Of a stretch of 64,000 nucleotides of DNA, positions 9,561 through 43,076 are shown in pieces. The DNA is from Anthoceros angustus (taxonomy: Eukaryota; Plantae; Anthocerotophyta): assembly GCA_010909165.1 (NCBI GenBank), contig MU008185.1:186001-250000 (forward strand). The letters run 5' to 3'. Position 1 is the first letter of the stretch, and the number at the start of each line of letters is the position of its first letter. The translations under genes were made by a program, and so were the position numbers. Below the pieces are notes generated by a model. That model did no database searches, had not been told where the DNA came from, and worked only from the letters and a program-made list of their open reading frames with translations.

Positions 9561-9639
9561 TGTTGAACTATGCACGAGTTCATTATCGGATGGCGGTAGG
9601 GAAGGCGGGAGGCGGCTGAGGCCCGAGGAAGAATATCCA

Positions 9640-10680
9640 ACAAGTTTTGTTCACCAAAGCAGTCATCCTCTATTATGGGTTCACTGTCTTGAAACATTTG
9701 TATTTGTGGATAAGAAGGCCATAAAAGATAAGTTAATTGAATTGCGAGGTTTATTCAACCAGCGAGTCAAAGTGCAACGAGGGGCCGTGAAGAGGATGGT
9801 CGGGATCTGGGGCCAGAAGATGAAGGCGTGGAGTCGGGCGAAGAGTAGGAAACACTCGAATGATCATCATTTTCGCAATTGATGAGGTTGTCGTCATGCT
9901 CTATTCACATGTAGTTTGCGTGCACAATGTATGCGTGCACATTTCGAATAGTATATGCGCCCATGCATAGGCTTTTGGTTGTGGCTATCCTCTATGAGAA
10001 GTTGTAGACTGTCATAGATATTATCTTCCATTTTCAAGAGTTTGTGCTTACCATAGAGAAGGACACGTGGGATGTGGCCCGGGGCCGACATCGGCATTGC
10101 GGCATAATGTAAGGCATCATCGTTGAGCGGGCGGGCATGTTCCTCATGCGTCATGGCGGGAACTAGTTTCTAAGTTCATTTGCGGTCGGGGGCTGGGCAG
10201 TCAATATATTTGCGACCACAATTGAGGCATGCGGAAGCCATCCCCACCCCAATCCAAGTCTTTTCAAACCAAATCCGAGTTAAGGCACTGCAACTCCGCC
10301 ATTCGCAAGGATCATCGGCATGGCGGGGAAGGGCGCCGGCCGGCGTCCTTCCTCAAACACCTTTCATACCACGCCCGGTAGTCTGTCCTCAAAGTTTCAT
10401 CACCCTTCTTTTTGTAGATTTCATTTTTTCCTCCACGGAAAAGAGAAACTGGCGGCAATGGCCTTTGTCATGGGTCTTAAATGCGGACCAATTGAGGTAA
10501 CTCTAACACCATAACCCTTCGTTGAATGGATCTTCTATCAACTTTGGTTCATGCGATTTGTCACCCTTCTTTTACTGTAATTGACCCCAAAAAGTGGGAG
10601 TTCAATGCCCATGTGAAACCCCTTGAGGAGGATATATGTCACAAAACCCTCTTCGTGAATATTCACCTTGAAGATATCAT
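9640..10680 (+). pseudogene. 5' part of beta-class DNA methyltransferase-like gene MTase-2 (inverted copy ~12650-13700)
   Basis: KLIELRGL (ORF 9508) resembles GLIDLKGM of the 27 kb paralog; VDFIF-PPR motif-IV-like at 10414-10438; same sequence as rc 20905-21960, which continues into SAM-binding motifs. Confidence 0.5.
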
Positions 10681-13600
10681 GTTTGTAGGGGCACATAAAT
10701 AAGGCCAAAAAGGTTTTACATGTTGTATACAAAGCGAATGTGGGAACATAACATCAACCAACAAATGATTTTCAAAATAACACGATAAACCTTCAAGAAT
10801 ATACAAACCCCTCTTGATTGTTGGTGACCTCTTGACAAAGATCACACCTTTCGAAACTATGTTTTTCCAACGCTTTGTAATGATATGTCCACCCTTGTCC
10901 GATGGATCCCATGTTGGAAACGGTTTACGCCTGCTCCATGTGTGCATGTAATAATGACTGGTTGGCCGGGCGTTAGTTGGACCTCGTGTGGTGACCACAT
11001 GGGTACTCGAGACCCCTCGAAAGTGTTTTTTGTTTTGTGTTTAAGTTGTGAGAATCGTGTGGAGTTGGAATGTGAAGTAGGTTAGGAAATAAGAAAAGTC
11101 TACTAGAGCCTAGTAGGAGGAAGAGAGTCTAGTCCCGATCCGACGGAACCTTGGAGGGTTGGGCTCGACCGTTGCTAGCTGTTGCTAGGGCCGTTGATAG
11201 CAGGACTGTTGCTATGACAACAACAGGAGCTGTTGCTATGGTAGCAACCAAGTCGGAGTTATTTTCCGATAAATTCGGAAAACCTATTTGGGCGAAATCA
11301 CGAAATACCGGGAAGTAGAGGAACATGGAGGTACTTGATCCATGCCTTGACCGGATCCTACCTATGGGTTGGACTCTTATGGAGGAGACTTTCACCGACC
11401 CATCCGATTCAAGAGCTCACCGAGGAGGAGTACTGAGGCTATGTTGCGAGCACAAGAGAGGGAGGAGTCCTCGAGGAGGTGGAGATTTTGTGGGAGAGTT
11501 TGCCCAACCAGCCAAGAGGGAGGAGAGCAGAGGAGAGCATGGGGCTAGGAGGCCTAGAGAGATAATAGGGGTAAGTGACCACGAAATAGGCATGTGCCCA
11601 TGTGCTATAGATGGTAGAAATCTTATCTTCTCTCTTAGTGGACAATTAAGAGATAGGCCTCTAGGACTGGTAGGCTAAGACCGATTGGTATTTTTGGCAA
11701 GCCAAGCTATTTCAGGTCACTTACCCCTATTATCTCTCTAGGCCTCCTAGCCCCATGCTCCTCTTGCTCTCCTCCCTCTTGGCTGGTTGGGCAAACCTCC
11801 CACAAAATCTCCACCTCCTCGTAGGACTCCTCCTCTCTGTGCTCGCAATAGCCTGTACTCCTCCTCGGTGAGCTCTTGAACTCGGATGGGTCGGTGAAAG
11901 TCTCCTCCATAAGAGTCCAACCCATAGGTAGGATCCAAAGGCCAAGGCATGGATCAAGTACCTCCATGTTCTCACATTCCCCTGCATTTCCTCGTGATTT
12001 CGCCCAAATAGGTTTCCGAATTTATCGGAAAATAACTCCGACTTGGTTGCTACCATAGCAACAGTTCGAGTTTGTTGTCATATAGCAACAGTCCTGCTAG
12101 GCCCCTAGCAACGCGTAGCAACCCGAGTACCAACCCTCCAAGGTTCCCCAGTGATCGTGACTAGACTCTCTTCCTCCTACTAGGCTCTAGTAGACTTTTC
12201 TTATTTCCTAACCTACTTCACATTCCAACTCCACACGATTCTCACAACTTAAACACAAAACAAAAAAAACACTCCTTTTCGAGGGGGTCTGAGTACCCAT
12301 GTGGTCACCACACGAGGGTCCAACTAACGCCGGCCAACCAGCGTCCGTTTATTACATGCACACATGGAACAGCGTAAACCGTTGTTTCCAACATGGGATC
12401 CATCGGACAAGGGTGGACATACGTCACAAACGTTGGAAAAACATAGTTTCCAGAAAGGTGTGATCTTTGTCAAGAGGGTCCACCAACAACCGAAGAGGGT
12501 TTGTATATTCCCCCCCTTGAAGGTTTATCGTATATTTTGAAAATCATTTGTTGGTTGATGTTATGTTCCCACATTCGCTTTGTATACAACATGTAAAACC
12601 TTTTTGGCCTTATTTATGTGCCCCTACGAAACATGATATCTTTCGAAGGGGTGAATATTCAATGAAGAGGGTTTTGTGACATATATCCTCCAAGGGGTTT
12701 CACATGGGCATGAACTCCCACTTTTGGGGTATGGGTCAATTACTGAGAAAAGAAGGGTGACAAATCGCATGAACCAAAGTGATAGAAGATCCATTCAACG
12801 CCGGAAGGGTTATGGTGTTAGAGTTACCTCAATTGGTCCGATTTAAGACCCATGACAAAGGCCATTGCCGGAATTGCCGGGTCTTTTCCGTGGAGGAAAA
12901 ATGAAATCTACAAAAGAAGGGTGATGAAACTTTGAGGACAGCTGACTACCGGGCGCAGGTATGAAAGCAGTTTGAGAGGAAGGACGCCGGCCGGGCCCTT
13001 CCCCCATGCCGATGATCCTTGCGAATGGCGTGCCTTAACTGGTTTGATTTGAAAAGACTTGATTGGGGTGGGGATGGCTTCGCCTCAATTGTGGTCGCAA
13101 ATATATTGACCGCTCAGCCCCCCCGCACATGAAATGAACTTAGTCGGAAACTAGTTCCCGCCGCCATGACGCAGAGGAACATGCCCGCCTGCTCAACGAT
13201 GATGCCTTACATTATGCCGCAATGCCGATGTCGGCCTCGGCCACAATCCCACGTGTCCTTCTCTATGGTAAGCACAAACTCTTGAAAATGGAAGATAATA
13301 TGTATGACAGTCTACAACTTTTCATAGAGGATAGCCACAACCAAAAGCCATGCATGGGCGACATACTATTCGAAATGTGCATCGCATACATTGTGCACCG
13401 CAAACCATGGAATAGAGCATGACGACAACCTCATCAATTGCCCTACGAAATGATGATCATTCGAGTGTTTCCTACTCTTCGCCCGACTCCACGCCTTCAT
13501 CTGGCCCAGATCCCGACCATCCTCTTCACGCTCGGTTGCACTTTGACTCGTTGAATAAACCTCGCAATTCAATTAACTTATCTTTTATGGCCTTCTTATC

Positions 13601-13829
13601 CACAACAGACAAATGTTTCCGCAGGCTGAACCCATAATAGAGGATGACTGCTTGGTGAACAAAAACTTGTTGGATATTCTTCGACGGATAGCCTTCGCCT
13701 GCCTCCCCGAAGTTGCTTCCCTACCGCCATCCCTCCGATTATATATTCTTCCACGCACTCCCTTCATACGCATCTGTGTTCGCCTGCACTAATGAACAAG
13801 GAAGTGAGGCTCGTGCATGTAGTTCAACA

Positions 13830-16100: not shown

Positions 16101-19100
16101 TTCCCACAAACCCCGCCTGGATTTCTCAAGACTACCGGAGTGTTTAACGACGCTGCTCCTTCGCCCACGACTTAGCGCCCTCAACTCGTCCGCCACAACT
16201 CCACCTCAACACACACGCCAGAACTCACCCTTCTCCCTTATCCATTCCCGCCTAGTAGTCACAACACCAACACATGGCTGTATTCACAGCCGCTTTGCCC
16301 TCCTACCGCTCACGCTCATGGAGAAGTAGCTTGCACTGCATCCCCGCTCCAAAGCAGCCTCCAAGGATGGCTTCCGCACAGAAGTCACCCCTAAGCGCCT
16401 CCTAATCCTCCTACGCCCACTGCTCATGGAGAAGTGGCCTGCAGCATCCCCACGCCTCCGCTCCAGCAGCCTCCAAGGATGGCTCAGCAGTCACCCCAAG
16501 CGCCTCTAATCCCCTCCTACGCTCAGAAGTGGCTTCAGACTGCATCCCCTGCCCAGCAGCCTCCAAGGTTAGTCTCGCACCCGAGAAATCACCCAGCACC
16601 TCCCGAGCTCGTCCGATCCCGGCCTCGCACCCATCAAGCGTGTTGAGCTCGTCACCGAGCTCTAAACACATCCTCTACCACCAATTAATCCCGTGACGGT
16701 GACGCAGAACTCACTCCTCCTCGAGCACTAAGGCAAGAGCACGAGCCAAGATGGTACCCGGATAGTCCGCCTTGGACGCCAGCCTTCCTATATACTCTAC
16801 CCCTAACCTAACCCGCCTATGTATGTATCCTAACCTCGCTATGTATGTACCCTAACCCTGGTCGTGTAACCACGGATTTAGCTCATCACGCTACGACTTC
16901 TGCACCACCCCGCCAAACAAGAGATCCATGCCAGCGATGCCCACCAAACTAAACCACCACCACCTGGCCGGACTCACGACTGACCACCACTCCGGGACCT
17001 CTCGGACGGACCACCCGCCTGACCGACCTGACCATCCTGACCGCCCGGACGGACCACTGACCGCCTCGAGACTGACCGCCCGACGGACCACTGCTCGACC
17101 GCCGACGGACCACTGCTGACCGCCTCGGACGGACCAATCACGGACCTCGCCCGACGGACCACCGACCTCCTCCTGACGGACCACTTGACCGCCCCGACCT
17201 ACCGCGACCCCGCCGACCTGACCACTGGCCTGACCGCCGACCAATTCGCCTGACCGGACGGACCCTCCGTCGGACCGCCCGGACCCCGCCTCGGACCGCC
17301 CGGACGGACCATCGGCCGACCGCCCTGACCACTCACGCCTGACCGCCCGACGACCACTCCTGACCTCCAACGGACCGAGGGTCTAGGGATTGCACCAGTG
17401 CAATCCGCCAAAATGGCCTTATTGGCTAACTCCTCCCTATCCCTCTTAACAACGACCCAAAACAAAACAAGCCTAAGACAAGTCGCCAAGAGTACGGACA
17501 TCGGATTTGGCACTCCACATACTCCCTTCTCATCTCTGGCGGCCCGCCAACACCCTGCTTCCGCCTCCGCTTGACGCCCTTCGCCTTTTACTACCTCCTC
17601 GTGTCGCAAGTCCAGCAACATTGTCATCCTTTTACCAAGAGTCCTCCGAGGATGAGCCTCCTCCGAGGTTGATGTGCCCTCCCCGCCTGCCCATCTTCTT
17701 TCTCCCTTTGAGCATGCCGGGCCTTAGATTCGCACCCCTCCCGGCCCCTGCATCCTCCCTACTCAGATACTCCACAACCGCCCGACCATTACACCCATCC
17801 ACAACCGCAACTGGTCCATTCTACTCCTACCTACTAACTCAGCAAGAAATTACAACACTATTCCCAAGAACGGCTAAAATGTGGCGCGACTTTCGATGGC
17901 CACCGCTACAGACAATCCTGCGTCGTTGTAAGGAAGGAGTCCGCTCCAAGGGAATGGTCTCGTGCTTATTCTCGCCTCGAGTTTACAAATTATCGCCTGA
18001 ACGGACTTCATCGTTGGGTCCGCGGCTCCACAACCTAAGTGTGTGCTCCTCCACAACTCTTGGACCAAAGCGCCAGCCCACCGGACCTTCCCACAAACCC
18101 CCGGATTTCCAAGATTAATGAATAAGTTTAACGACGCTGCCCTTCGCTGCCCACGACTCCAGCGCCTGGCCTCCTCAACTCGTCCGCCACAACTCCACCT
18201 CAACACACACGCCTGTAACCTACCCTTCTCCTTATCCATTCCCGCCTAGTAGTCACACACCAACACGCTGATGTATTCACACCAGCGCTTTGTTTCCCCG
18301 CTTCACGCTCATGGAGAAGTAGCTCACCGCAACCCCACAGCCTCCGTTCCAGCCTCCAAGGATGGCTTCCGCCCAGTCACCCCAAGCGCCCTAATCCCCT
18401 CCTACCGCTACGCTCATGGAGAAGTGGCTTCACCGCATCCCCACACCTCCGCTCCAGCAGCCTCCAAGGATGGCTTCACCAAAGAGTCACCCCAAGCGCC
18501 TCCTAATCCTCCTACCGCTTCACGCTCATGGAGAAGTGGCTTCAGCACTGCATCCCCACACCTGCTCCAAAGCCTCCAAGGTTAGTCTCGCACCGAGAAA
18601 TCACCGCGAGCACCTCCTCGAGCTCAGTCCGACCCGGCCCCGCACTCAAGCGTGTTGGCGGAGCTCACACCGAGCTCTAAACACATCCCTCTACCACCAA
18701 TTAATCCCGCATGGTGACGCAGAACTCACTCCGCCTCGAGCACAAGGCAAGAGCACACTGAGCCAAGATGGTACCCGGGATAGTCCGCCGCCTTGGACGC
18801 CAGCCTTCCTATATACTCCCATACCCTAACCTAACCCGCCTATGTATGTATCCTAACCCCGCTATGTATGTACCCTAACCGGTCGTGGTAACCGGACGTA
18901 GCTCATCATCGCTACGGACTTCTTGCACCACCGCCTCGCCAAACAAGAGATCCATGCCAAAGTATGCCCACCAAACTAAACCACCGGCCAGACCACTCCG
19001 GACCTGCCGGGCAGACCACTCTTCCTCATTCCCTTCACTAGTCTAGTACTCACCTTGTGTTTTGAGTTTTCGTGTGTTGGAGGTCGGGTGTTTGGGAGAA

Positions 19101-20559: not shown

Positions 20560-21960
20560 GACTATCTTTTCTGATACATACCTCCTTTGCGGAAGCTGAA
20601 GGTCTTACGATGCGGTTGAAATGTAAGCTCTTCCTACGCATGGAAGGACCTCATAGCCATGTATTCGTTGAGGAATGTACCACCGCACATCTCAATCTGC
20701 CTCAAGCGCAATGCGATTAAATATGAGGACTGACAAGTGTGGTGGTCCTGGCGCACGCATGCATCAAGAACCCGGTCCCTTCTTTTGAGAAGGTCCTTAT
20801 AAGTTTCATAAGAAGACCAAGTGGGCGTTGATAAGGGCATACCACCCTTTGTCATTCGGCAATAGACCTTTCTTCACCATAGTGGCGTATCCTATAACCG
20901 ACCTCCCATTGTTGAACGTAACACGATATCTTTCGAAGGGTGAATATTCACGAAGAGGGTTTTGTGACATATATCCTCGGGGTTTCACATGGGCATTGAA
21001 CTCACTTTTGGGGTATGGGTCAATTAAAGGAGAAAAGAAGGGTGACAATTCGTATGAACCATTGATAGAAGATCCATTCAACGCCGGGTTATGGTGTTAG
21101 AGTTAACCTCAATTGGTCGCATTTAAGACCCATGACAAGGCCATTCTGCCGTTTTGCGGTCTTTTCGACAAAAATGAAATCTACAAAAAAGAAGGGTGAT
21201 GAAACTTTGAGGACGGTGACCGGCGGCGGTATCAAAGCAGTTTGAGAGGAGGGCGCCGGTGGCGTCCTCTCATGCCGATGATCCCTTGCGAATGGCGGCG
21301 GTAGCGGGCCTTTAGTCGGTTGGTTGAAAAGACTTGAGATTGGGGTGGGGATGGCTTCCATGTCTCAATTGTGGTAAAATATATTCACATGCTTTAGTCC
21401 CCATCGCAATCGATGAACTTAAAAGTGTCGGAAACTAGTTCCGCCGTCATACGCGCAGAGGAACATGCCAACGGCTCATCGTGTGTTGCCTTTCATTATG
21501 CCGCAATGCGGCCTATCACACTCCACATGTCCTTCTCAATGGTATGGACAAACTCTTGAAAATTGGAAGATATTATCTATGTCAAGTCTACAACTTCTCA
21601 CAGAGGATAGCCACCACAATCCTATCATGGGCGTAGATACTATAGAATACCTTTGCTCACGGAATGCCGGCAAGTGCTTTGTCATCAGTGTTTCCTACTC
21701 TTCGACTCCACGCCATCATCTTATTTGGGCCGGCATCATGACCATCCTCTTGTCCTCGGTTGCACTTTGACTCTGGTTGAATAAAGCCTCGCAATTCAAT
21801 TAACTTATCTTTTATGGCCTTCTTATCCACAGTACAAATGTTTCCAGTAGTCTGAACCCATAATAGAGGATGACTGTTTGGTGAACAAAAACTTGTTGGA
21901 TATTCTTTGATGGATAGCCTTGCCCCGTCTCCCGAGTTGCTCCTGCTTGCCATCCCTCGA
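20560..21960 (-). pseudogene. Beta-class N4C/N6A DNA methyltransferase-like gene MTase-2, most complete copy, frameshifted
   Basis: Minus strand from 20842 reads VCPYQRPLGLLMKLIRTFSKEG / DRVLDAC / ..TTTLV / NRIALEAD, matching the HPxQKPxxLxxxLIxxxSxxGDxVLDxxxGSGTT...hhhE pattern of N6_N4_Mtase enzymes. Upstream TFNNGRSVI and downstream EELTF...KGGMYQ are shared with MTase-1. Confidence 0.7.
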
Positions 21961-23199
21961 TTAAATATTCTTCCACCCTCCTTCATACGCATCTGTGTGT
22001 TGATTCTGTACCAATGAACAAGGAAGTGAGGCTGTGCATGTAGTTAACACAAGTCACCTTCCCAATCCAAAAGGGTCTATTTTGCGTGTCGTATGAGGCA
22101 ACTAACATTCCCTTTATTTCTGCGATATCACCATTCAACCGTGACATTTCTTGTTGTTGCCTCCCAGTTTTGGTATGCTCCCAAATACATATCTCGTTGT
22201 GGGAGCTCCTCGAATGCCTCCTCCGGTGCTTCATCCGAACATGCTGAGGTTGTGCCTTCCACTTGATCGTACCACCTCCAAGGTTAGTCTCGACCCGAGA
22301 AATCACCCGAGCACCTCCTCCAGTCCCATCCGTCCCCACCCATCAAGCGTGTTGGCGGAGCTCGCCACCGAGCTCTAAACACATCCTCTACCACCAATTA
22401 ATCCCGCATGACGCAGAACTCACTCCCTCCTCGAGCAGGAAGGCAAGAGCACGGAGCCAAGATGGTACCCGGATAGTCTGCCCTTGGACGCCAGCCTTCC
22501 TATACTCCCATACCCAACCTAACCCGCCTATGTATGTATCCTAACCTGCTATGTATGTACCCTAACCCCGGGTCGTGGTAACCGGGACGTAGCTCATCAC
22601 CGCTACCGGACTTCTTGCACCACCGCCTTCCGCCAAACAGAGATCCATGCCGCGATGCCCACTCAAACTAAACCACCCGGCCACTCCACCTGCCGGATTA
22701 CCGGACGGACCACTCCACGACCTCCCCGGACGGACCACCGCTACCCTCGCCTGACGTGACTACCTGTCGGACCCACGACCACTCGGACTCGCCCCCGGAC
22801 GGACCACGCCTGGACCGCCCGGACGGACCACTCACGGACCCTCGGACGGACCACCCGCCGGACCTCGCCCGGACGGACCACCTGGCCGGACCTCGCCCGG
22901 ACGGACCACTCGTCGGACCTCGCCCGACGGACTAATCAGACCGCTCGGACGGACCATCTGCCTCGCCAGACCCTGACGGACCACCGGCTTCTGACCGCCC
23001 AGACCAAAGTCTAGGGATTTAATCGGCGTAATAAATGCTTTTATTGGCTAACCTCCTATCCCTCTTAACCGTTGACCCAAAACAAAACAAGCCTAAGACA
23101 AGTCGCGAGTACGGACATCAGTTTGGCACTCCACAAGATGTGTGACCGCTTTCCTTCTATCCCGTGCACTCCATCGGCAGAACAGGCGAAGAAATGTCT

Positions 23200-24250
23200 C
23201 TGTTCGCCTCCCCATCCGAAAGCGGTATCATTGCACGAAATCGCTCTTTGGTCGCTTGCAAACACATGTTGTTGCAACAAGGCTTCTTGAAATCTGCAAG
23301 CATTGTCTCCCTTCACTTTTGTCAACGACACTCACCGCGTCTCGGCATGATAGAGTACTTGCGGTTGTCGGGGCCTTCAAAGTCTCACTTAGAGGCTTGG
23401 ATGGAAGGATTGAGAGGCATCGGTGTGGAGTGGGAATCGTCGTCCCCAGGGCCTTCATCATCCGGTGAGTGGCGAGCAACAATATCCTCATGAAACAAAC
23501 CACGGCGTGGAACCATCGATGTCTCCCAGGGAAGGTCACGAGACATTGGGAACGAGAGAACGGCGTTTGGATGGCTTCCTCCAAAGCGACATAGCGATGC
23601 AAATTCCTAGGTGTTCGAGGACACCTCGCGGGACATTTGGCGGCGACAAATGTCGGCGTTTTCGTCTGCTGCAAGAGCAATGTCCGAATATTGAGGGATC
23701 ACACCATGTGGATTTTCACATATCGTCAATTATAATCGAAGGGAAGAACCTTCATCATCGTTCTTACAATGGCAAAAGCGCACCACGGCGGTGTGCGATG
23801 TCGTGATGTGGCGGCCTTTGGACCTCCTCCCTTCTCTTGTTTTCGGTGAAGCACGAGGACATTGGGAAGGCAAGTCTTGATCCCAAAGATGATCACGATG
23901 GCCGATGAGCCCACAATGAACTTAGAACTTAGAATCAAAACAAACCGCAAGGAAAGCGTAAGCTGATGCGGGGCGAAGAACTCAAACCTCTTGTCCTTCC
24001 GGTGTGTGAGGCGCAACATTGTATGCCCTCTCGTTCAAGAACCTTGCGGCGCCCTCGCCGTGGGGCGAGGCGAGATTTGAAGGAAGTTGCATGCGAATGG
24101 CGGTGTGTGCCTTACAAGGCATATCGCAAATATAGGAAGGACATTATTTCTCTCTGTCGTTACGACATCATGAAGGTCTATCAGTGAGAGGTATCCAACG
24201 GTGCATCGCGCCGTCATGCCTTTTTATGGTCGACAATTATGTTGCCCCGG
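23200..24250 (-). pseudogene. JmjC/cupin-like 2OG-Fe(II) dioxygenase candidate, frameshifted
   Basis: CLVTFPGRHRWFHAVV (His in 23501-23515) resembles the JmjC P..WxHaV strand; an H-R-D motif is encoded at rc 23892-23900 in a shifted frame between FIVG and NVLVLH...GGPK. Confidence 0.45.
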
Positions 24251-24694
24251 CCAGCCGTCACGGAAGTCAATGTGATCATGAATAGACAAGAGTTTATATT
24301 ATGGCATAGCGAAATAGGGTGGAACGTGAAATGTTAAGTAGGTTTTTGGTCTATAAATGCCTGGGGGCAAGGGAACCCTAATTACAAACCTCTCTCTTGT
24401 CGGTTGCGAGGCGGTGTGCGGTGTGGGCGTATTTCCAGTCAGGAGGCAGTGAGCGGCATACACGTGTGTTGCTTGGCGAGTTGGAGAACAATTGCGGTTG
24501 AATTGCTTTGTCCCTTTGCGGCCCGCAGCGGAATTCAGCGATGCGGCAGTCGAGCTTTGGAGGCGATGGCGCAATCGGTCGGCGGGTTTTGCGAGACAGT
24601 TGGCCCCTCCATGTGATCGAGCATCACCTTCCTTCCATTCATCTTTCCAGACAGTTGACGATTTGTCGCCGCCTTGTGAGTTTGCTTTGCGCAA

Positions 24695-25429
24695 TTGAGA
24701 TGGCGGCGGAGGCGGAGCAAGAAGGACTTAGCGGGCGGTGGCCGACCCCAGGCGCCACCGCGGCGGAAAAGCGAAAGGCGGAACAAGGCGGCTTCAACCC
24801 GACGCGAAGGTAAGCGGTCGGGAGGCGGGAGGTGTGGGAGGCATAAACCATCTATGGAGGCAAAATGGGAGCATGTCTTGAGGAAGACAAGCCGGACAAA
24901 AGCTGGCGTGCAAGGGTGGGAAGGAGGCTCAAACCTCAAAGCATGTGGTGCCACCTCCAATTCCATCGCCTTTCAGCTACGAGGAAACCGTGCACATCCG
25001 CAGGGAGGCCAGATTGACCCTGTTATGATTTTGCAGAAGGATTGGATGCTCGTCCAGGATCCGCATCCAGAAGAGGAAAGCAAGACATGGGCGCTGAAAC
25101 TACGGATAATGGGTGCGGGGGCTTTGCCCAATCAGAGAGCAAGAGCTGGATGGGTAATCTGGGCAACAATGGATATGAATGAGGGGGAGCCGGAGTTCAC
25201 GCTGTTTTGCACCACCAGGCCATATGAGTTTGATGCTGATCCGGGACCACGATATATCTGGTCTTATGTTCTCGACCTCGGAGGGTTCAATGCCAAGAAA
25301 TGTGCACCTCGCTCACTTGTCGAAGAGTTCCACAGTGCATGCGACAACCGTAAGTTGGAACAAACAATGTCTTTTGAGAACCATGAGGCTAGGATGAGCG
25401 TGATTTTCGCTTTCTCTGTTTCCGGCTAG
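24695..25429 (+). CDS. Uncharacterised element ORF (244 aa), possibly the N-terminal part of the ParB-MTase gene
   Basis: Open frame with a globular-looking C-terminal half (DWMLVQD...KTWALKLRI...AGWVIW...EFTLFCT), downstream of a TATA-like ctataaat at ~24350. Confidence 0.45.
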   Translation: MRWRRRRSKKDLAGGGRPQAPPRRKSERRNKAASTRREGKRSGGGRCGRHKPSMEAKWEHVLRKTSRTKAGVQGWEGGSNLKACGATSNSIAFQLRGNRAHPQGGQIDPVMILQKDWMLVQDPHPEEESKTWALKLRIMGAGALPNQRARAGWVIWATMDMNEGEPEFTLFCTTRPYEFDADPGPRYIWSYVLDLGGFNAKKCAPRSLVEEFHSACDNRKLEQTMSFENHEARMSVIFAFSVSG

Positions 25430-26199
25430 TCGGAATGGCCCTCATCGAGGCTATTTGCGGAAGATTACGGCGATGTGGATCACGGAGAGAGCTTTCAATG
25501 AGAAGGGTGAGAGCAGCCCATCAAAGAATTGCGGAAGAGGCGGAGTCGGGCCCCGGATCCCGAAAGTGAACTTGGGCCCTCGGATGAGGAAGATGGCCCC
25601 ATTCCGACGTCCTCGGGCATTCGGAGGAAGAAGTGTCCGGGGCATGAGGAAGACGGAGATCTTTGGGATCTGGCATTGCATGGGGGTCAATGGTTGTCCC
25701 ACCATGGCCTCTGATCCGGAGCAGGCGGCCGGCCCGGTGTGTGAAGGGTGGGCAGGCGAACTTGCCCACCGGATCCTAAGCGGTTTATCCGGTTTCAACA
25801 AGGAGATGGGGTTGGGGCCGGCGGCGCGCCCCAGAGCGCCATGATTCTTCCACGGACCGCGGTGGAAGAATAGACACCATGGGATCCCCCGAGAGGGAAG
25901 AGGGGTGGGTGTGGGCGGTGGCGGGAAGAGGGGTGGGTGTGGAGGCAGGGGCTGAAAGAGAGGAGGAGGCGCGGCCCGGCCCTCCTCACGCGAGGCGAAG
26001 ACCCGGTGAAGGTCGATGGGAAAGCGCCCTGCTTCAAATTTGGATTCTATGCAGGGGACTACAAAGGCACATAGTGGCGGCACGGAGGCGAAGGAAGAAA
26101 AAAACCGAAGAAGCGGCGGTGGAAGATCCGGTTGGAGTCATTCAGGTCCATATTTGACAGAACGGTTAGAAGACGCGATCCGGGATGCACCCCTCTCTC

Positions 26200-28230
26200 G
26201 CTGAGGATTGACTTCACGAAGAAGGTGGTCTTGGAAACGTGTTGGTCAAGTTGGAGAACTTAAGACCAGCGTCGCACATAGGATCGCGCAGATTCGGTTG
26301 ATGAGGCATGGGCCAATTATTTGGCTAGGGTTATTTCGAAGGGAGGATAGAGGAGGGTGTTTTGCCACTCTTATGTATGATAGATCCAAGTGAGTGCTGA
26401 CCTCGGCAAGCGGAAGATGGCGGGCGAAAAAATACGTTATGGGGTTCTTGGTGGGAACCATACATATGCGACCATGAAACATCTATGTGATATCTCACCG
26501 TGGAAGAAGAGGTTTCAATATGTGGAAGCACATGTCTATTGTGGGCTTCTTGGAAATCAGTCTTGTACGGATCACAATACCATGTCGGACGGAAGAAAGA
26601 AGATGAACTTCATTGAGCGGTCCGGTGCCACGAGATGAGCTGCAGTTGCGAAGCGAAAGTGAGATGACCATGGCATGGAAGTACAATGCATGTACAAAGT
26701 GCTTGGATTGATTGAGGATGATGAAGGGCGAAGGCGATGTCTACAAGCGAACAAAGTAGACAATCGCACACATTTTATGCATCGCCATGGCGAGGAGGAA
26801 GGTGTGGGACAATGTGGACTTGATTTTTCAAAGTGGGAGGTGGAGAGCTTGAGCGGAAGAAGCATTTACCTGAGGACTAGCAAGAAAGGGAAAGGAAGGA
26901 AGATGGTGAGGAGAAGCAAGTGGACACAGTATACGTAAAGCCAAAGGACATGTTGGCAAAGCCATGGAAATCCTTCCAAGGAATACCAGCTGGAGAGTGC
27001 GGGCAGCAAATTCTGGTCACAGCTACAGAAAAAGTTTTAACTGGACTTATTGATTTGAAGGGCATGGACGAGGAGATCACTTTGCGGAAGAAGTTCCATG
27101 TCATACAAGTTGCTATGGTAAAACACCTGGGGTGCTCTTCGTTCGCTGAGGTGCGAGAAGAATATCCGTTGCATTCGACAGACCAGATGTTGTCCCGCTT
27201 TCAAACTGCTTTTGCTGGAAAGGTTAGTTTCCTGCCCATGTGTGTTCGAAAAGTGCGGGGAGGCGCGGCCGGCCTCTCTGTCTTTGCGTTTGACTAACCA
27301 TCATGTGTTTGGCAGCCGAAGGATATTGAGGTCCTTTCCAAACTTCCGATGTCTTCCAACATTTCATTTTGAGTAAATAATTGGAAAGGGGCTGGAGACG
27401 ACGGCGTGCTCTGCGAGACAAGGACCTTGAGGAAGGATTGGAGGTCTTCAATGTTCCATCCTCGGACAAACAAGTACAATACCAAGTGGAAAGCAGGGAT
27501 GTTTTGGACATGCGAGGATTTCTGAGAGGCCGGTACACACCACTGGTGATGGACGTTCCAAGGGGGTTTCAAATTGGGCCCTTGGACAAACGAGTTGACA
27601 TGCAGATGATGGACACTATTTTGCAGAGTTTTGCGGAGAAAACTACTTCGGATGAGTTGAGAATGATTGTCATGCATGGTGTGGAGGAGGCTCACGTGAG
27701 GGAGTCAATGCGAAAGTGGAGCAAGAAAGGGGCTTGGTCTCATTTGTATGGGACAAGACCAACATGAACAATGACGGTGGATTGAAACCGTGGAATATGT
27801 CACGGTAGGGTGGGGCATGGGAGATGGATTCACGAGGATAGAGTTCCAATGATGCCTAATGCCATGCACGGCACTTTCAACAATGGAGTGCAGCGATCGC
27901 ACGATACGGTTGTGAAGAAAGCAGTGTACATGTCCCAAGACAAGCTGGTTGTTTGCCCATACGAGGCCTCGGGCTTATGATGAAACTTATCGAACCTTCT
28001 CGCGAGAGGGATTGGATTTTGGACGTATGCTCGGAAGTGGGACAACGTTATTGGCTTCCTCATGCGTGGAATTGTATTCTTGTTGAAGGACGAGGTGTCG
28101 GGATACATACCACCGCATTCGGGCATGAGGTTACGCGATCTTTGAAGAAGCGTTTGACGCCCACCGCAGAGGTCTTGCGCTTTAGGCGAAGGAGGTGTGT
28201 ATCGGTGAGAAGGACTCCACAAGCGCAGTT
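26200..28230 (+). pseudogene. ParB/Srx-like domain fused to beta-class DNA methyltransferase (MTase-1), frameshifted
   Basis: LVKLENLRP..SVDEAWANYLARVISKGG..YGVLGGNH (26450-26461)..VYCGL..DHN; LVMDVPRG motif-IV-like (27543-27566); CPY..P.GLMMKLIE..DWILDVCS(G)SGTTLLAS (28022-28060) and NCILVE (~28071-28088). Motif order IV then I indicates the beta class. Confidence 0.75.
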
Positions 28231-29699
28231 GTTTCCTTAAACGCAAGGCAAGACCAAAAGCGGTGATCTTTTGGCGGATGGGCAGCAAACTTTGGAAGTG
28301 TGGGCCTTCCCAGCCGACGGCGGTGCAAGAGAGAAGACACAAGGGCGTTGGGGAGAGCGATAGCCGATGAAGAGGAAGTGGGCGCTTAATCTGCTATTGT
28401 GATGGATTGAGTTTTCTACCCGAGTCCCAAGTTAGCCCTAAGGAATAGGCTTAGTGTTCTCATGTCATGTGCATCCGCCGCTGCTTAGTTCATAATCTTG
28501 GGACCGTTCATTGCGGCAAGTGTTGTCTTGGTTTTAAGGCCCAAATAACAATGAAGGGCGCGGCCGGCGCCCTCTATCCGCTTTCATGTCTTTGTTGCGC
28601 CGAACACGTTTTTGAATACCTACGTGTTCTACCATGGTCGACCTTTCTTCAAAAGAGCTAAAAGGCATATGGACCGTGTGTCATGTGCAAAGAGGGTTTT
28701 CATTTCACGGAAGGGGGTTCGGATATTCACCCCCTTCACAAGATATCGTGTTCCGATGACTTGCAGCTGGATCTTTTTGATTGGTGCGCCAAATGTCCAG
28801 CTCATTCGAGTTTGATGCACGTATAGATGCATGGGCCTTGGTTTCTAGTTGAGCTACATTTTCCAAAATTCGACATGTATGATGGTGATTTCTAATGGCC
28901 AGCCTTTTGAAGATGACAATGTTTTACAATATTTTGCAGAGAAGCAAGAAAATAAATAGATTAGATGATTTGTCCTTGAGTAATGAAAGCACTGGGGATG
29001 CAATCGAACATAAGTATAAGAGCATACTTTTGCCACTCGACTAGTGAGAGCAGGAGTGTCTGAAGAAGAGGGTCATCGCCTAGTTGGGGATTTTGACCAA
29101 ATGGGTGTATTTGCTGAGGTAAGGAGGACACATGCATACCCACATGGCTTGCGGCCCACTAGAGCAGCTAGGTGTTCGAGACAAACTATAGCCAAGCTTT
29201 GCCGTGAGATTTTGAATTTAAGATCCGACTTGCTCCATGCCGCTTCCATGGGTAGATTAAGGTTGAAAGCGGTATGGACTTGACAAGAAAAAATGTAAGC
29301 TCAAGAGTTTGATCAAGAAGGGTTGAGGGGCCTCACCATCCTTTCATGTCAATTCTGCAGAGGCCTAATGTTGCAGATCTAAGTCACGGCTTATCTTCGA
29401 CATGGAGGGGCTGGTCAGTCGGTGTATACCATCCGGGATTGCTCAATCACGGGGTTTGAAAAGAGAATTGATGTGAGTGTTGGTGTGGTGGTAAGTATGC
29501 ACGGGCAACCTGCAGGCGAAGTGTTTGCCTACACAAGTATTGACGCAACCCTCTCCAAACCCGGTGTATTGCACCTTTCACTTATGCTCCAGTTCTTTGG
29601 AGGATAAGTGCGATCATCGACCACTTGGTACAAATGTATGTCCGCATTTATGCGGAAGGTGGGGCACATTAGGTCTTCTTTGGGCTCGGATGCATGGGG

Positions 29700-30110
29700 C
29701 ATGGGAGATGGATTCACAGGATAGAGTTCCAATGATGCCTAATGCCATGCACGGCACTTTCAACAATGGGAGGTCCGTGATCGCACGATACTTGCCAGAA
29801 GAAACAGTGTACATGTCCCAAGACAAGCTGGTTGTTTGCCCATACCGAGGCCTCGGGCTTATGATGAAACTTATCGAACCTTCTCGCGAGAGGGATTGGA
29901 TTTTGGACGTATGCTCGGAGTGGGACAACGTTATTGGCTTCCTCGCCGAATTGTATTGCGAAGCCGAGGTGGTGTGGATACATACCACCGCATTGCCGGG
30001 CATGAGGTTACGCGATCTTTGAAGAAGAGCTGACGTTTGACGCCCACCGCAGAGGTCTTGCGCAGTTTTGGGCGAAGGAGGTGTGTATCAGCGAGAAGGA
30101 CTCCCTGCAA
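29700..30110 (+). pseudogene. Duplicated C-terminal half of MTase-1
   Basis: ORF 29525 contains HGTFNNGRSVI...VVCPY.GLGLMMKLIEPSRERDWILDVCS. Confidence 0.7.
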
Positions 30111-30359
30111 GCGCAGGTTGTTTCCTTAAACGCAAGGCGGCTAAAGACCAAAACTGGTGATCTTTTGGCGGATGGGCAGCAAACTTTGGACACTGGCAGC
30201 CTTCCCGACCCTTGACGACGCAAGAGAACAAGAAGACACAAGGGCGTTGGGGAGAGCGATAGCCGATGAAGAGGAAGTGGAGCGCTGTAACTGCTATTGT
30301 GATGGATTCGAGTTTTCTCGCCGAGTCCCAAGTTAGCCCTAAGGAATAGGCTTAGTGTT

Positions 30360-30740
30360 CTCATGTCATGTGCATCCGCCGCTTTAGTTCATACCGTGTT
30401 ATGGGACCGTTCATTGCGGCAAGTGTTGTCTTCTTTGCCGCCCAACAACACGAAAGGCGGCCGCCGCCTCATCCGCTTTCATGTCTTTGTTAACACGCTT
30501 TTTTTGAATACCTACGTGTTCTACCATGGTCGACCTTTCTTCAAAAGAGCTAAAAGGCATATTTCGGACTGTGTCATGTGCAAAGAGGGTTTTCATTTCA
30601 CGGAAGGGGTTCGGATATTCACCCCTTCACAAGATATCGTGTTGGTTGCGTTGGATCTTTTTGATTGGTGCGCCAAAATGTCCGGCTCATTCGAGTTTGA
30701 TGCACGTATAGATGCATGGGCCTTGGTTTCTAGTTGAGCT
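30360..30740 (+). pseudogene. RING-like zinc-finger ORF (copy at ~28460-28850)
   Basis: CVMC (30570-30581) then, one frame over, PLHKISCWLRWIFLIGAPKCPAH, giving C-x2-C...H...C-x3-W...C-P-x-H; ligands 3 and 5 are not cleanly seen. Confidence 0.45.
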
Positions 30741-32399
30741 ACATTTTCCAAAATTCGACATGTATGATGGTGATTTCTAATGGCCAGCCTTTTGAAGATG
30801 ACAATGTTTTACAATATTTTGCAGAGAAGCAAGAAAATAAATAGATTAGATGATTTGTCCTTGAGTAATGAAAGCCTGTCGGATGCAATCGAACATAAGT
30901 ATAAGAGAGCATCGCACTGGCTACGAGCCTAGTGAGCTGTGGAGTGTCTGAAGAAGAGGGCGATCGCCTAGTTGGGGATTTTGACCAAATGGCTGAGTAT
31001 TTGGAGGCCGAAAGGAGGACTGCTTATACCCACCGTGACTATACGCGCTATATGGCAGACTAGGTGTTCGAGACAAACTATAGCCAAGCTTTGCAGAGAT
31101 TTTGAATTTAAGATCCGACTTGCTCCATGTGCCACCCATGGGTAGATTAAGGTTGGTATGGACTTGACATGGACTTGACAAAAAATGTAAGCTCAAGAGT
31201 TTGATCAAGAAGGGTTGAGGGGCCTCACCATCCTTTCATGTCAATTCTGCAGAGGCCTAATGTTGCAGATCTAAGTCACGGCTTATCTTCGACATGGAGG
31301 GGCTGGTCAGTCGGTGTATACCATCCGGGATTGCTCAATCACGGGGTTTGAAAAGAGAATTGATGTGAGTGTTGGTGTGGTGGTAAGTATGCACGGGCAA
31401 CCTGCAGGCGAAGTGTTTGCCTACACAAGTATTGACGCAGCCCTCTCCAAACCCGGTGTATTGCACCTTTCACTTATGCTCCAGTTCTTTGGAGGATAAG
31501 TGCGCCAGTCATCCGGCCACTTGGTACAAATGTATGTCCGCATTTGTATGGGAAGGTAAGGCACATTAGGTCTTCTTTGGGCTCGGATGCATGGGGCATG
31601 GTTTTACAATATTTTGCGAGAAGCAAGAAAATAAATAGATTAGATGATTTGTCCTTGAGTAATGAAAGCCTGGCTTGGATGCAATCGAACATAAGTATAA
31701 GAGAGCATCGCACTGGCTACGAGCCTAGTGAGCTGTGGAGTGTCTGAAGAAGAGGGCGATCGCCTAGTTGGGGATTTTGACCAAATGGCTGAGTATTTGG
31801 AGGCCGAAAGGAGGACTGCTTATACCCACCGTGACTATACGCGCTATATGGCAGACTAGGTGTTCGAGACAAACTATAGCCAAGCTTTGCAGAGATTTTG
31901 AATTTAAGATCCGACTTGCTCCATGTGCCACCCATGGGTAGATTAAGGTTGGTATGGACTTGACATGGACTTGACAAAAAATGTAAGCTCAAGAGTTTGA
32001 TCAAGAAGGGTTGAGGGGCCTCACCATCCTTTCATGTGCCCACCAAGGCCTAATGTTGCATCTGCGGCTTATCTTCGACATGGAGGGGCCAGGCAGCATG
32101 CACGCCATCCGGGATTGCTCTGAATCACGGGGTTTGAAAAGAGAATTGATGTGAGTGTTGGTGTGGTGGTAAGTATGCACAGGCAACTTGAACGAAAGTG
32201 TTTGCCTACACAAGTATTGACGCAACCCTCTCCAAACCCGGTGTATTGCACCTTTCACTTATGCTCCAGTTCTTTGGAGGATAAGTGCGCCAGTCATCCG
32301 GCCACTTGGTACAAATGTATGTCCGGCATTTGTACGCAAGGTGGGCACATTAGGTCTTCTTTGGGCTCGGATGCATGGAGAGGGTTTGCAAATCATTGA

Positions 32400-39400: not shown

Positions 39401-42303
39401 CGCTGCTTAGGACATGACTCATGCTGTGGCAGACAACTATCTTCAGTAGTTCAGCTCAAGCAAATTATTGTTGTAGTTCTCTGTACCTGTAGGTCACCAC
39501 GCTTCTCTGTCGTAGACTGGATGAAAAGGTTGAACAAGAGGGGAAGAAAATTTCGGGCAAACCCAGCAATTGCTGCAATGTTGGATGCAGCTACTTCTGC
39601 CGTGTACAAGGATCTAGCCTTCTCTTCAGACGTAGTTAGGTCCTCAGTGTGGTCTGCAAGTCCTTTCCTAGGAAGATTTTTGACAGCATCTCCCCTTGCA
39701 AGCTTGTTTTGAAGCACAAGCCTCTGGAAGCAGACATTACGACTACAGGTTAGCAGTCCAGCGAAGCACTGTCAACTCATGATTGTACCACTTTACAGTT
39801 CATAGAGCACAGCTGCGCCAAAACAGCTGGTGATATGGATGAAATCCAAGACAATAGGTCGCTTGAAGCATAACACCTAACACTGGATTCAATACCAAAG
39901 ACCACAAGTATCTCAAAACATAATGCACGACATACCTGTAGGCTAAAGCAGACAATTCCCCTTAGTTCAGGCTCGTTTGTGAGAAGATCCCCTAGCAACT
40001 TTGCAATATAGCGGAAACTTGTTGCTGTATCGACTGGATAGTTACAGAATGATGGCAAGAGCGACCATATTGACTGAGACAGACTCTCAGCATTCCGTGC
40101 CCCAATAGGCTTACCCTCTGCAGCATGCTGTGTCGGTACACAGCGAGTCAACATGAGAATTGCCAGACACAATAATGCAAAAACATTCACACAATATCCA
40201 ACCGAGCAAGTTCACTTTACCTTCAAAGCTCGATCATGCAGTCGTGAAGCAAGAGGAGCCATATGCTCTACGAAGTACTGCAAGCTGGAGCCAACAATAT
40301 GCTGCTTCAAAATTGGTAACAGCCATGTGCATGACTCAGAAAAGTCATGGACGTCCATGTTCAGAGGCAGGAGTTCCAAGAAGTTCTCAGGACCCATGGA
40401 TGCAACCGCTGTTCCTAAGGTCTTGTGTAACTGTGAAACCACCAACGTCATTAAGTGGTGAATTAGGTGAAACTCATGACGGCAGACACACTGCACCTGA
40501 GGAATTCGACAGCAAACCTGCTTTCGGCAGGAGACATCTTGATGTGGAAGCTCTTGAAGCTCAGCTAGACCCTTGACAACAGCTGGCATTAGTCGGGCAG
40601 AAGCTTTCCCTGCCAGGAGTTACCCAGGAAACAACCGGTCAGATAAGTGGTATGCCGCCCACTCCAGTGTGGCATTCCATAACCAGCACCTGGTGGTCAC
40701 ATTTTAGAATGCGTCATAAATCCAGACAGGTGGAGAACCTCACCCAATTTTTCAAAAAGATCTGCAATGACTTGCAGTGACATGTCCCACGCCATACTAT
40801 ACTGGTAACCCAACATAGTTTCAGCTGTTGCACAGACTCTTTCTACAGCATTTGGCATTCTGTTTGGCTGTCCCGGATTGTCAAGCTGACCCACAGCCTG
40901 GTGAACCATTTGTTCGTCCAAACAATTTTGGACAGAGCTTCGCAGACACTCTGTGGCAGTGTACACAACCTCCTCCCTTTCTGAGGCAAGCAACTCTGCG
41001 TGCATCATAGAGCTTAGAATGATTAGCCTCCGTCTTCCAGTTCGACCGAGTCAGAGCAAACATGCACAGTCTCATTTGATATAAACCTGTGAGTGCATGA
41101 AAAACGGCAGGAAACTTGGCAGCACACAGTGCTGGCTCGGAATGATGTAGCCTTTCCAGCCCTTGCTGCAGAACGCGTGCCTCAACCGTAAGCTCATCCA
41201 CATTCCCCGTCTTCTCGGCAGATAGCTGAGATGCAACTTTTTGTAGAACGTCCCATAAACTTGCTCCCGGTATCTCAGCAGCGGGATCCTTACAGAGTGC
41301 TTGCAGCGTAGCCAGGACATGCTTCGTCAGAAGTGGATGCCTGAGCTCATAAAGATCTCGTAGAACTTGCAGGATCTTGCTGATCGCCTTCTTTGACAGT
41401 AGCGGGAGGACATGTTTGAGAGCCCCTAGAACGTGCAACAACTCCAATGCACTGGAATGGCCAGTATCTGAGTCCACTTTGTTATCAAATTTTCCACCTC
41501 CAACATTTTCCCTGATAGGAGCTGCAGCCTTATCAAACAAACTAACTACAACATCACTCGCCAAAGACAAGGATGGCGAGCCACGCATCCAAAGCAGCAC
41601 CGCAGGCAGGCATTCATGTGCCCGCTTCCGCACCTGAGGAAAAACATCAAGACATCATCAGAAGCAAAGCCACCCTAGAGCCCAGCACGCAACTAACGTT
41701 AAGATAGGAGAAAAAACATAAACCCAAGCAAACCTTGGGATGCCGGTCAACACAACACCGCAGAAGCAACTGAAAGGACGGGCCGAATCCCAACCAAGTG
41801 GACTTATCCATTCCTTGCACCACCCGGACAATACACAAGAGTCCAGACTTGACCGCCCCCTGATCCACCGCCTCGTTGCTCATGAGCCCTACCAACAGCT
41901 GCAATGTGGCGTCCCCCTTGGCCCTGACCACAGCTGGAGCTAACTTCGGCAGCACCAGTGACAGAAAGGTGCACAGGGCTGTGATGACGGCAACGTTGCC
42001 GTTGCCTTTCTGCCGCTCCAAGGTGGACATACAGGCTCCAAAGTAGGCGGTGGGAGAAGGCTCCAATCCCTGCTCTCTCAGCACCTCCGCCATGGCGGCT
42101 GCCACGGCGCACAAGTGCTGGTGCTCCGGCTGCTGCGACCTGCCATACCTGGCCTTCACGAACGCACCCAAATCCTGCTCTCCGCTTGCCAGAGACTCAG
42201 CCTCCTCCATCTCGTCAAATTCAGCACTGTTCGAATGATTGCCACCACCTCCCGCGACGCCTCCAGCTGCACGCTTCATGGGCTTCTTCGGGAGGCTCCT
42301 CAT
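36467..42303 (-). CDS. RRP12: RRP12-like ribosome biogenesis protein, many short introns
   Basis: N-terminal QPEHQHLCAVAAAM...PTAYF; internal helical exons (FARNFLPLLFN, SPHTKSAAVAGLARL); C-terminal KMEPYAYWPLDQKLLNRR. The exact start codon is uncertain. Confidence 0.9.
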
Positions 42304-43076
42304 TGCGCAATTGCGGTGTCTTCCGCCGTCTTGGCACAAACGCGTGCTTCAACGGGTGCCTTTCGATTGACGAAGCTCACATATATAGTTGCCGTTACAT
42401 ACATAGTTTCTAAACGAACTAGTTCGAGCAGCATATGTATGGGGTACTTTCCCTTCTCGGTAGTTCCATGGCCCTGCTCGAAGTCCACAGGCGGGAGCTT
42501 ACAGGAGCTCAGCCAAGGGTTCAAGCTTGCTTGAAAGTGTACTGAACTGCAGCAAGCCCTTTTTCGATGAGCCTTTCAAACTCACTGGAAGCAGCTACGA
42601 GCAAAGCTTTGAGTTCTTCAAACCTGGAACAGGATCTGAAAGTAGGGCGTCGTTTTCTGTTGTTTCTTCGTTGGAGATAAAGTCAGTGTCTTGGCTACCT
42701 ATCTGTTTGGCAGCGAGTTACCTGCCTCTGGGATTTGCGGGTGATGTTTGCTTGGTGGTTTTGCAGGTGGGTCTGTGAAAGCTGCCTCGAAGTCCCTTCA
42801 AGAGTGACGGTGCTATTCTCTCGTCCACACTCCTGTCTGTGCCCCTGCATAATTTGAAGGGTTAGGGCTGCTTTTGCTAACAGCTTCATAGCCTCACATG
42901 CGTTGTGGTTTTTGAGTCTCATATTTTCACAAGAAACCTCTCTTCTCATATCCTCCACACGCGCGAGCTCAATCCTCTCTACCATTCCTCTTAACGAAAC
43001 AGAGTTATTCCACGTTCTATTGCAAGAAAAGCGCGCAAAATTGGGTGGGGTATAAAGTGTACTAGGTACGTATGCA

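Follow-up and report, generated by a model that had tools for sequence, protein, structure and literature searches.

The genome of Anthoceros angustus contains, within about 2 kb, strings reminiscent of a ParB-like domain and of a beta-class DNA methyltransferase, which raises the question of what kind of gene they belong to, in which state this gene is and how it came to lie in a land plant genome. A preliminary description had taken the locus for a horizontally acquired, transposon-propagated 4mC/6mA 'writer'. We analyzed the locus together with its surroundings in a stretch of 64 kb of the same contig, which is referred to as the window in the following. The analysis suggests that the locus is most probably what remains, in partial and dead form, of a gene carried by a repeat and composed of a probably ParB-like part, a linker and a beta-class methyltransferase, and that this gene was of the Sola1 accessory-gene type.

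The locus is an interrupted gene copy

Both a six-frame listing and a three-frame print of positions 26200–28240 (plus strand) are devoid of any long open reading frame. All motif strings that had been quoted for this stretch are present on the plus strand (GGNH at 26450–26461, DVPRG at 27552–27566, CPY at 27954–27962, LMMKLIE at 27974–27994, ILDVCS at 28016–28033, GSGTTLLAS at 28033–28059 and NCILVE at 28070–28087), but the 'one-base corrections' by which they had been joined are far too few. A direct string check places the strings in three different reading frames, and reading through from 26208 to 28142 has to pass at least 11 breaks, i.e. in-frame stops and frameshifts.

The pieces between these breaks begin with an upstream piece containing HGPIIWLGLF (26208–26390), which is delimited by the reading frames and might represent the first half of a ParB-like domain, and continue with the piece harboring GGNH (26390–26635, with YGVLGGNHTYAT at 26438–26473), a candidate ParB/Srx-like core as judged from its ESM Atlas features. 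Two in-frame stops precede a linker of no recognisable family (26675–27294), which is read in two frames (26675–26935 and 26920–27294) with one frameshift within. The presumed catalytic half (27381–27764) contains LVMDVPRGF, with DVPRG at the position of motif IV, and is followed by a segment upstream of motif X (FNNG ... VVCPY, 27834–27962) that is common to the tandem copy and the minus-strand relic described below. A frameshift-aware alignment assigns motif X and the start of motif I to GLGLMMKLIEPSRERDWILDVCS (27965–28033) and the remainder of motif I, after a frame break, to GSGTTLLASS (28033–28062), while a scan with the C-terminal part of the profile points to a motif II-like WNCILVE (28067–28087). 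A further frame break separates the latter from DEVSGYIPPHSGMRLRDL (28089–28142), after which a stop follows at 28143. Since at least 11 stops and frameshifts interrupt its reading, the locus is a pseudogene, a dead partial gene copy, and hence this copy yields no product. It is functionless in itself and cannot mark DNA.

One might object that what looks like frameshifts reflects introns or errors of the assembly in a live, intron-containing host gene, from which a 4mC/6mA enzyme is still made. We consider this very improbable, because in-frame stops follow each other within a few codons (26636 and 26660; 27765 and 27783) and the frame changes sit inside motifs with overlaps of 0–3 bases, a spacing too tight for introns. 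Moreover, the tandem copy shares the break in motif I, and no RNA run is listed for the locus.

The 3′ end resembles the AdoMet-binding part of beta-class methyltransferases

Searches of the stop-free pieces of the locus against curated models (Pfam with E values up to 1, PHROGs, NCBIfam) returned neither a methyltransferase nor a ParB family; phmmer searches of the PDB with three of its pieces gave nothing relevant, and ESM Atlas searches with the linker and the methyltransferase-end fragment gave nothing informative. We therefore describe the results of a profile seeded with the beta-class adenine methyltransferase YhdJ of E. coli, with which 74 IMG/VR loci were fetched. The resulting methyltransferase HMM consists of 30 non-redundant proteins (YhdJ and 29 IMG/VR relatives) and has 262 columns. 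All 1200-nt tiles of the window on both strands (n = 210) were scanned with it, using a purpose-written local profile-versus-DNA aligner in which frameshifts are permitted and stops are penalised. The best score was obtained for a tile on the minus strand (21400–20201, 30.8 bits), followed by the locus (28.8 bits) and by the tile of the tandem copy (21.8 bits), as compared to 18.6 bits for the next best tile and a median of 14.7 bits. The same three places again came out on top under other penalties. The alignments cover HMM columns 181–216, which correspond to motif X and motif I, with the locus itself spanning columns 186–216. Herein, LGLMMKLIEP-SRERDWILDVCS/GSGTTLLA of the locus is aligned to vallerliklvsnegdvVLDpfmGsGtTgvA, and PYQRPLGLLMKLIRTFSKEG/DRVLDACV of the minus-strand relic to PtqkPvallerliklvsnegdvVLDpfm.

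Readings in which the pieces were joined with an X at each break were also scored by hmmsearch. The locus obtained 10.7 bits (maximum of 1000 shuffles, 4.8 bits), the tandem copy 11.1 bits (at most 2.6 bits in 1000 shuffles) and the minus-strand relic 15.9 bits (at most 1.4 bits in 1000 shuffles). Comparison of the three X-joined readings with the methyltransferase alignment by hhalign returned a probability of 91.5% and an E value of 8.7e-7 over 43 columns. When the C-terminal end of the profile was used for scanning, the tile 28067–28142 ranked first, albeit narrowly (17.9 vs 17.2). The block furthermore exists in two diverged lineages that keep the same order of motifs, namely FNNGRSVI-Y, CPY, LGL-MKLI, LD-C, G-GTT-L, N-I--E and -V--YIP. 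With the breaks read through as X, the AdoMet-binding motif X precedes motif I near the C-terminus, and the series X-I-II occupies the 3′ end of the locus, upstream of the terminal stop. Because the scan, the shuffles, the hhalign comparison and the motif order kept in two lineages all point in this direction, we regard the predicted AdoMet-binding subdomain of a D12-type (beta-class N4C/N6A) amino-methyltransferase at the locus as genuine. The earlier claim that a beta-class methyltransferase remains here is thus borne out for its AdoMet-binding C-terminal end.

The position of motif IV and the presumed catalytic half

In the locus copy the position of motif IV reads DVPRG and not (D/N/S)PP(Y/F/W), and hence the motif that defines catalysis in this family is lacking. 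The DVPRG region takes rank 35 of 636 tiles and is not significantly methyltransferase-like. Likewise, the locus is not near the top of any scan with profile columns 1–120, 100–185 or 1–180. A lenient alignment runs collinearly from column 14 to column 220 and pairs LVMDVP with iitDpPY, RMIVMHGVE with ailvfgase and SFVWDKTN (27740–27763, in a frame different from that of LVMDVP) with vlvWvktn; its N-terminal part adds almost no score and is not significant. As far as profile comparison can tell, the half expected to hold motifs IV–VIII is not detectably methyltransferase-like. The proposed activity as a 4mC/6mA 'writer' is contradicted by stops and frameshifts throughout, by DVPRG at motif IV and by the lack of a listed RNA run.

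These results also bear on the idea that the resemblance is one of chance, i.e. that a non-coding repeat yields short methyltransferase-like strings as soon as several frames are allowed. Frame switching is indeed needed repeatedly, the curated models are silent and the DVPRG half lies at noise level. However, the three loci took the first three ranks in the unbiased scan of 210 tiles, their motif order is kept in two diverged lineages, the hhalign E value is 8.7e-7 and the shuffle scores lie far below those observed, so that a coincidence appears decidedly unlikely.

A phmmer search with the DVPRG piece among 1.84 billion representatives matched three giant repeat proteins; these matches were short and scattered and turned out to be spurious by blastp.

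A candidate ParB-like head

The pattern Y-x-V-L-G-G-N-H-T-x-A appears similar to the strand and the G-x-H-R box that are known from ParB/Srx and DndB-type domains. On the basis of its ESM Atlas features, the GGNH piece reached a recognition value of 3217 (mark, 2300), with DUF6551 accounting for 40 and ParB_N for 29 of the top 100 named clusters, and with a best Atlas score of 0.92 at 167 shared features. By the tool's own calibration, a result at this level constitutes a lead. No ParB_N profile or profile of a clan member matched the piece in Pfam, PHROGs, NCBIfam or the PDB, and nothing was found by tblastn against phages or by a protein homologue search that was length-filtered against full-length kin. 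The ParB profile of the YbdM family gave no signal in a DP scan or by hhalign either, which, given how narrow this family is, is weak negative evidence. AlphaFold, run on the single sequence of the piece, produced a model with a pLDDT of 49, which was discarded. Taken for what the protein language model suggests, the head of the former gene was probably ParB-like. The ParB-like reading of the GGNH region is accordingly favored by clusters of ParB_N and DUF6551, while every HMM search remained silent on it.

A match to a 'chromosome partitioning protein' of Streptococcus phage Javan187 was traced to a split annotation and provided no usable ParB–methyltransferase fusion.

Further relics of the methyltransferase end

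Three methyltransferase relics are present within the 64-kb window alone. The C-terminal end of the locus is duplicated in tandem at 29696–30002 (plus strand), where it is in frame across CPY-LMMKLIE and broken at motif I. According to self-blastn and a repeat search, this duplicate belongs to a unit of about 1.89 kb that is present in about 2.4 tandem copies of 86–94% identity (27811–32387, plus strand) and that consists of the methyltransferase end and an unrelated high-copy repeat. Positions 28637–29800 reach a word depth of up to 1644 in the independent DNA run X1 and thus represent a repeat of very high abundance that has nothing to do with the methyltransferase gene. As both tandem copies are broken at motif I, the duplication must be later than the inactivation.

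The second, diverged relic of the C-terminal end lies on the minus strand (20644–20928), is the top profile place of the window (30.8 bits) and shows the motifs FNNGRSVIGY ... CPYQRPLGLLMKLI ... VLDACV ... TTTLVS ... FNRIALEAD. The motif II-like pattern of the locus recurs in this relic (FNRIALEAD / DVRWYIPQRI). One of its fragments, 44 aa in length, gave a weak match to a PHROG methyltransferase (E 0.028), which is the sole curated methyltransferase match.

The minus-strand relic directly follows 22288–20916, a segment that the DUF7869 transposon copies have in common. The downstream flank of the relic (20648–19010) recurs at 2610–4298 on the plus strand.

The locus is a native repeat of the plant genome

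The domain types at the locus are typical of prokaryotes and phages, and it might accordingly stem from bacterial or phage contamination or from a chimeric assembly. The same contig, however, encodes a plant-specific eIF-4B (59214–60617, minus strand, 338 bits), RRP12-like HEAT repeats (40881–42336, minus strand) and a photolyase/cryptochrome FAD-binding domain in a single open reading frame of 443 aa (45491–46819, plus strand). No DNA match to the 2-kb stretch was found among 50,697 phage and 72,556 plasmid records. Searches of IMG/VR and of JGI metagenome contigs turned up no close relatives of the methyltransferase pieces, and a scan of metagenome and IMG/VR contigs with the transposase piece yielded no relatives. 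In the independent DNA run X1, many short contigs of 85–99% likeness cover 26273–28440, whereas none lie over 24500–26272. Therefore, the relic belongs to a diverged multi-copy family, with homology starting at about 26273.

Since plant genes are present, phage and plasmid DNA matches are absent and diverged multi-copy relatives occur in an independent run, we conclude that the contig is plant nuclear DNA and the locus a native repeat, which excludes bacterial contamination. Together with the heavy decay of the locus, this leaves contamination or chimerism in the wider sense with next to no probability. The argument that host-like neighbors speak against contamination is hence confirmed by the eIF-4B, RRP12 and photolyase-type genes and by the multi-copy state in X1.

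The antisense strand of the eIF-4B gene contains an open reading frame of 485 aa without family.

Relics of DNA transposons surround the locus

The core of a DUF7869 DDE transposase, which belongs to a neighboring decayed DNA transposon, was identified at 8565–8827 on the plus strand (Pfam PF25273, 27.9 and 37.8 bits, gathering threshold 26). Self-blastn reveals that 4871–9560 matches 18424–13843 (minus strand) at 81%, meaning that elements with the DUF7869 transposase lie in inverted copies, and between them extends a palindromic stretch of 4.1 kb (9588–13732) with arms that are 87% alike. An internally deleted copy of the DUF7869 type (23135–20916, minus strand) ends beside the second methyltransferase relic. 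DUF7869 cores and relics thus lie 3–17 kb from the locus, the nearest being this internally deleted copy on the opposite strand. A literature search for DUF7869 returned no mention.

Between 20 and 40 kb of the window no inverted repeats of at least 60 nt were detected, and no transposase is demonstrably of the same element as the locus. Short TIRs, a target-site duplication and palindrome arrays were likewise not found near the gene, so that its carriage by a Sola1/DUF7869 element remains putative. The designation as 'transposon-propagated' accordingly holds in so far as the locus is a member of a repeat family with multiple copies and lies amid relics of DNA transposons, but neither TIRs nor a transposase of the same element attach it to a particular transposon.

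This also leaves room for a different origin, namely that the locus is a relic of an endogenised giant virus or another viral insertion that contained a phage-type methyltransferase, and not of cut-and-paste cargo. YhdJ-related beta-class methyltransferases are also encoded in metagenome bins of giant viruses (GVMAG loci), and the lack of demonstrable TIRs and of a same-element transposase would fit such an insertion. On the other hand, no viral contig with a close relative of the pieces was found, no other virus-type gene lies nearby, and the DUF7869 transposon relics around the locus, the multi-copy family and the published transposon precedent all favor transposon cargo. We hence judge a viral insertion to be unlikely, and a transposon accessory gene remains the preferred origin.

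Comparison to known systems

To place this former gene, it was compared to published genes in which similar domains are found. The closest precedent is an accessory gene of the transposon Sola1-1_Ec32 of the brown alga Ectocarpus (Genome Biol 2025), which encodes a ParB-like domain and an N4C/N6A methyltransferase (PMC12477816). The Ectocarpus gene is intact, codes for 1104 aa, is transcribed and lies opposite the transposase in the 21.5-kb element (PMC12477816). The Anthoceros locus agrees with it in uniting the two domain types in a single polypeptide and in its setting within eukaryotic repeats and transposons, with DUF7869 relics nearby. In contrast, it is a pseudogene of about 1.95 kb in a land plant, has no demonstrable borders or partner transposase and was compared to Sola1-1_Ec32 by description only. 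Transposon-borne ParB–methyltransferase genes are thus reported for algae (PMC12477816; Iyer 2011 as cited there).

On the enzyme side, the locus resembles the YhdJ/PF01555 type in motif X (P-x-x-x-P/L ... L-x-x-L-I), in motif I (LD...GSGTT) about 20 residues further on and in the motif II-like strand at its C-terminal end. It differs from this type in reading DVPRG instead of DPPY, in an N-terminal half without significant similarity and in that its pieces fail the curated models. A prokaryote-type amino-methyltransferase is also known from another non-seed land plant, Marchantia, in which the host genes DN4MT1a and DN4MT1b are expressed and act as 4mC writers in sperm with a TSPPY motif (bioRxiv 10.1101/2021.02.12.428880). 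The preprint does not mention a ParB domain (bioRxiv 10.1101/2021.02.12.428880). The Anthoceros locus, set apart from DN4MT1 by description and not by sequence, is dead and carries DVPRG in place of TSPPY.

ParB-type DNA binding is joined with nucleic-acid- or chromatin-modifying domains also in the cargo of Plavaka elements of Bostrychia, where PAG2 encodes an N6A methyltransferase with a SET domain and PAG3 a ParB domain with a 2OG oxygenase (bioRxiv 10.1101/2025.02.11.637652). There, however, the domains are distributed over two genes of another transposon superfamily, and the inverted-repeat arrays on the PAG3 side have no counterpart here. Finally, a ParB-HTH-fused 'chlorophyte-type Dam' has been described in chlorophytes and chytrids by Iyer et al. 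2016 (PMC4738411), where phage ParB–terminase loci are considered as sources of eukaryotic methyltransferases. It likewise has a ParB-type module N-terminal to an adenine methyltransferase in eukaryotes, but this enzyme is of the M.EcoKI/M.TaqI type (DpnM/Dam clade), whereas the methyltransferase block of the locus corresponds to the permuted YhdJ type with motifs X and I at the C-terminus.

Given these algal, chytrid and Marchantia precedents, the kind of gene is already known and the locus is a further copy of it. The horizontal acquisition that had been proposed would concern the family as a whole. The surprise at finding such a gene in a plant had therefore been overstated, as transposon-borne ParB–methyltransferase genes exist in algae (PMC12477816) and a 4mC enzyme in Marchantia (bioRxiv 10.1101/2021.02.12.428880).

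A possible history of the gene

The ancestral gene probably coded for three parts: a head that bound DNA and was ParB-like, a long linker and a circularly permuted amino-methyltransferase module of the D12 type. In a live element, the head, if it adopted a ParB fold, would presumably bind the DNA of the element itself, and the protein would then methylate this DNA at N6 of adenine or N4 of cytosine, provided that it once was catalytically active. In view of the non-canonical DVPRG, the live protein may alternatively have bound only AdoMet and DNA. In this copy, stops and frameshifts, at least 11 in number, have put an end to any product, and the 3′ end was later duplicated in tandem together with the unrelated high-copy repeat.

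The locus thereby adds one more fossil, indicating that ParB–methyltransferase cargo genes as published for algal transposons spread in a non-seed land plant, too. Its interest lies with the family and with intact copies rather than with the locus, and if any land-plant member still deposited 6mA or 4mC, this would be informative as to the use of DNA marks other than 5mC by transposons and hosts. There is a slim chance that a land-plant branch with DVPRG-like motifs forms a distinct lineage that is still active elsewhere in the genome and of which the locus is one fossil. Such a lineage would mark or bind its own transposon DNA in a manner unlike that of known 6mA/4mC writers.

Other reading frames and repeats of the window

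Upstream of the relic, an open reading frame of 244 aa (approximately 24695–25429, plus strand) matches no Pfam family and is not covered in run X1, and a search for homologues in the protein collection, length-filtered to exclude full-length kin, returned none. It is probably spurious and lies in G+C-rich unique DNA. The two longest stop-free pieces of 23068–23698 (minus strand) match no Pfam family at E values up to 1, and a JmjC-like reading of them is without support. A cargo gene with ParB and 2OG-oxygenase domains is known on red-algal Plavaka elements (bioRxiv 10.1101/2025.02.11.637652).

G+C-rich tandem repeats are located at 22794–22985 (periods of 27 and 103 nt) and at 18298–18581 (112 nt), and they recur at 1–500, 5761–6288 and 16560–17519 within the transposon copies. 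An inverted repeat of 1.8 kb, formed by 1–1792 and 6651–4871 (minus strand), is 98% identical and thus far younger than the other pairs of the window; the two arms could be an element's long terminal repeats or the outcome of a recent inverted duplication.
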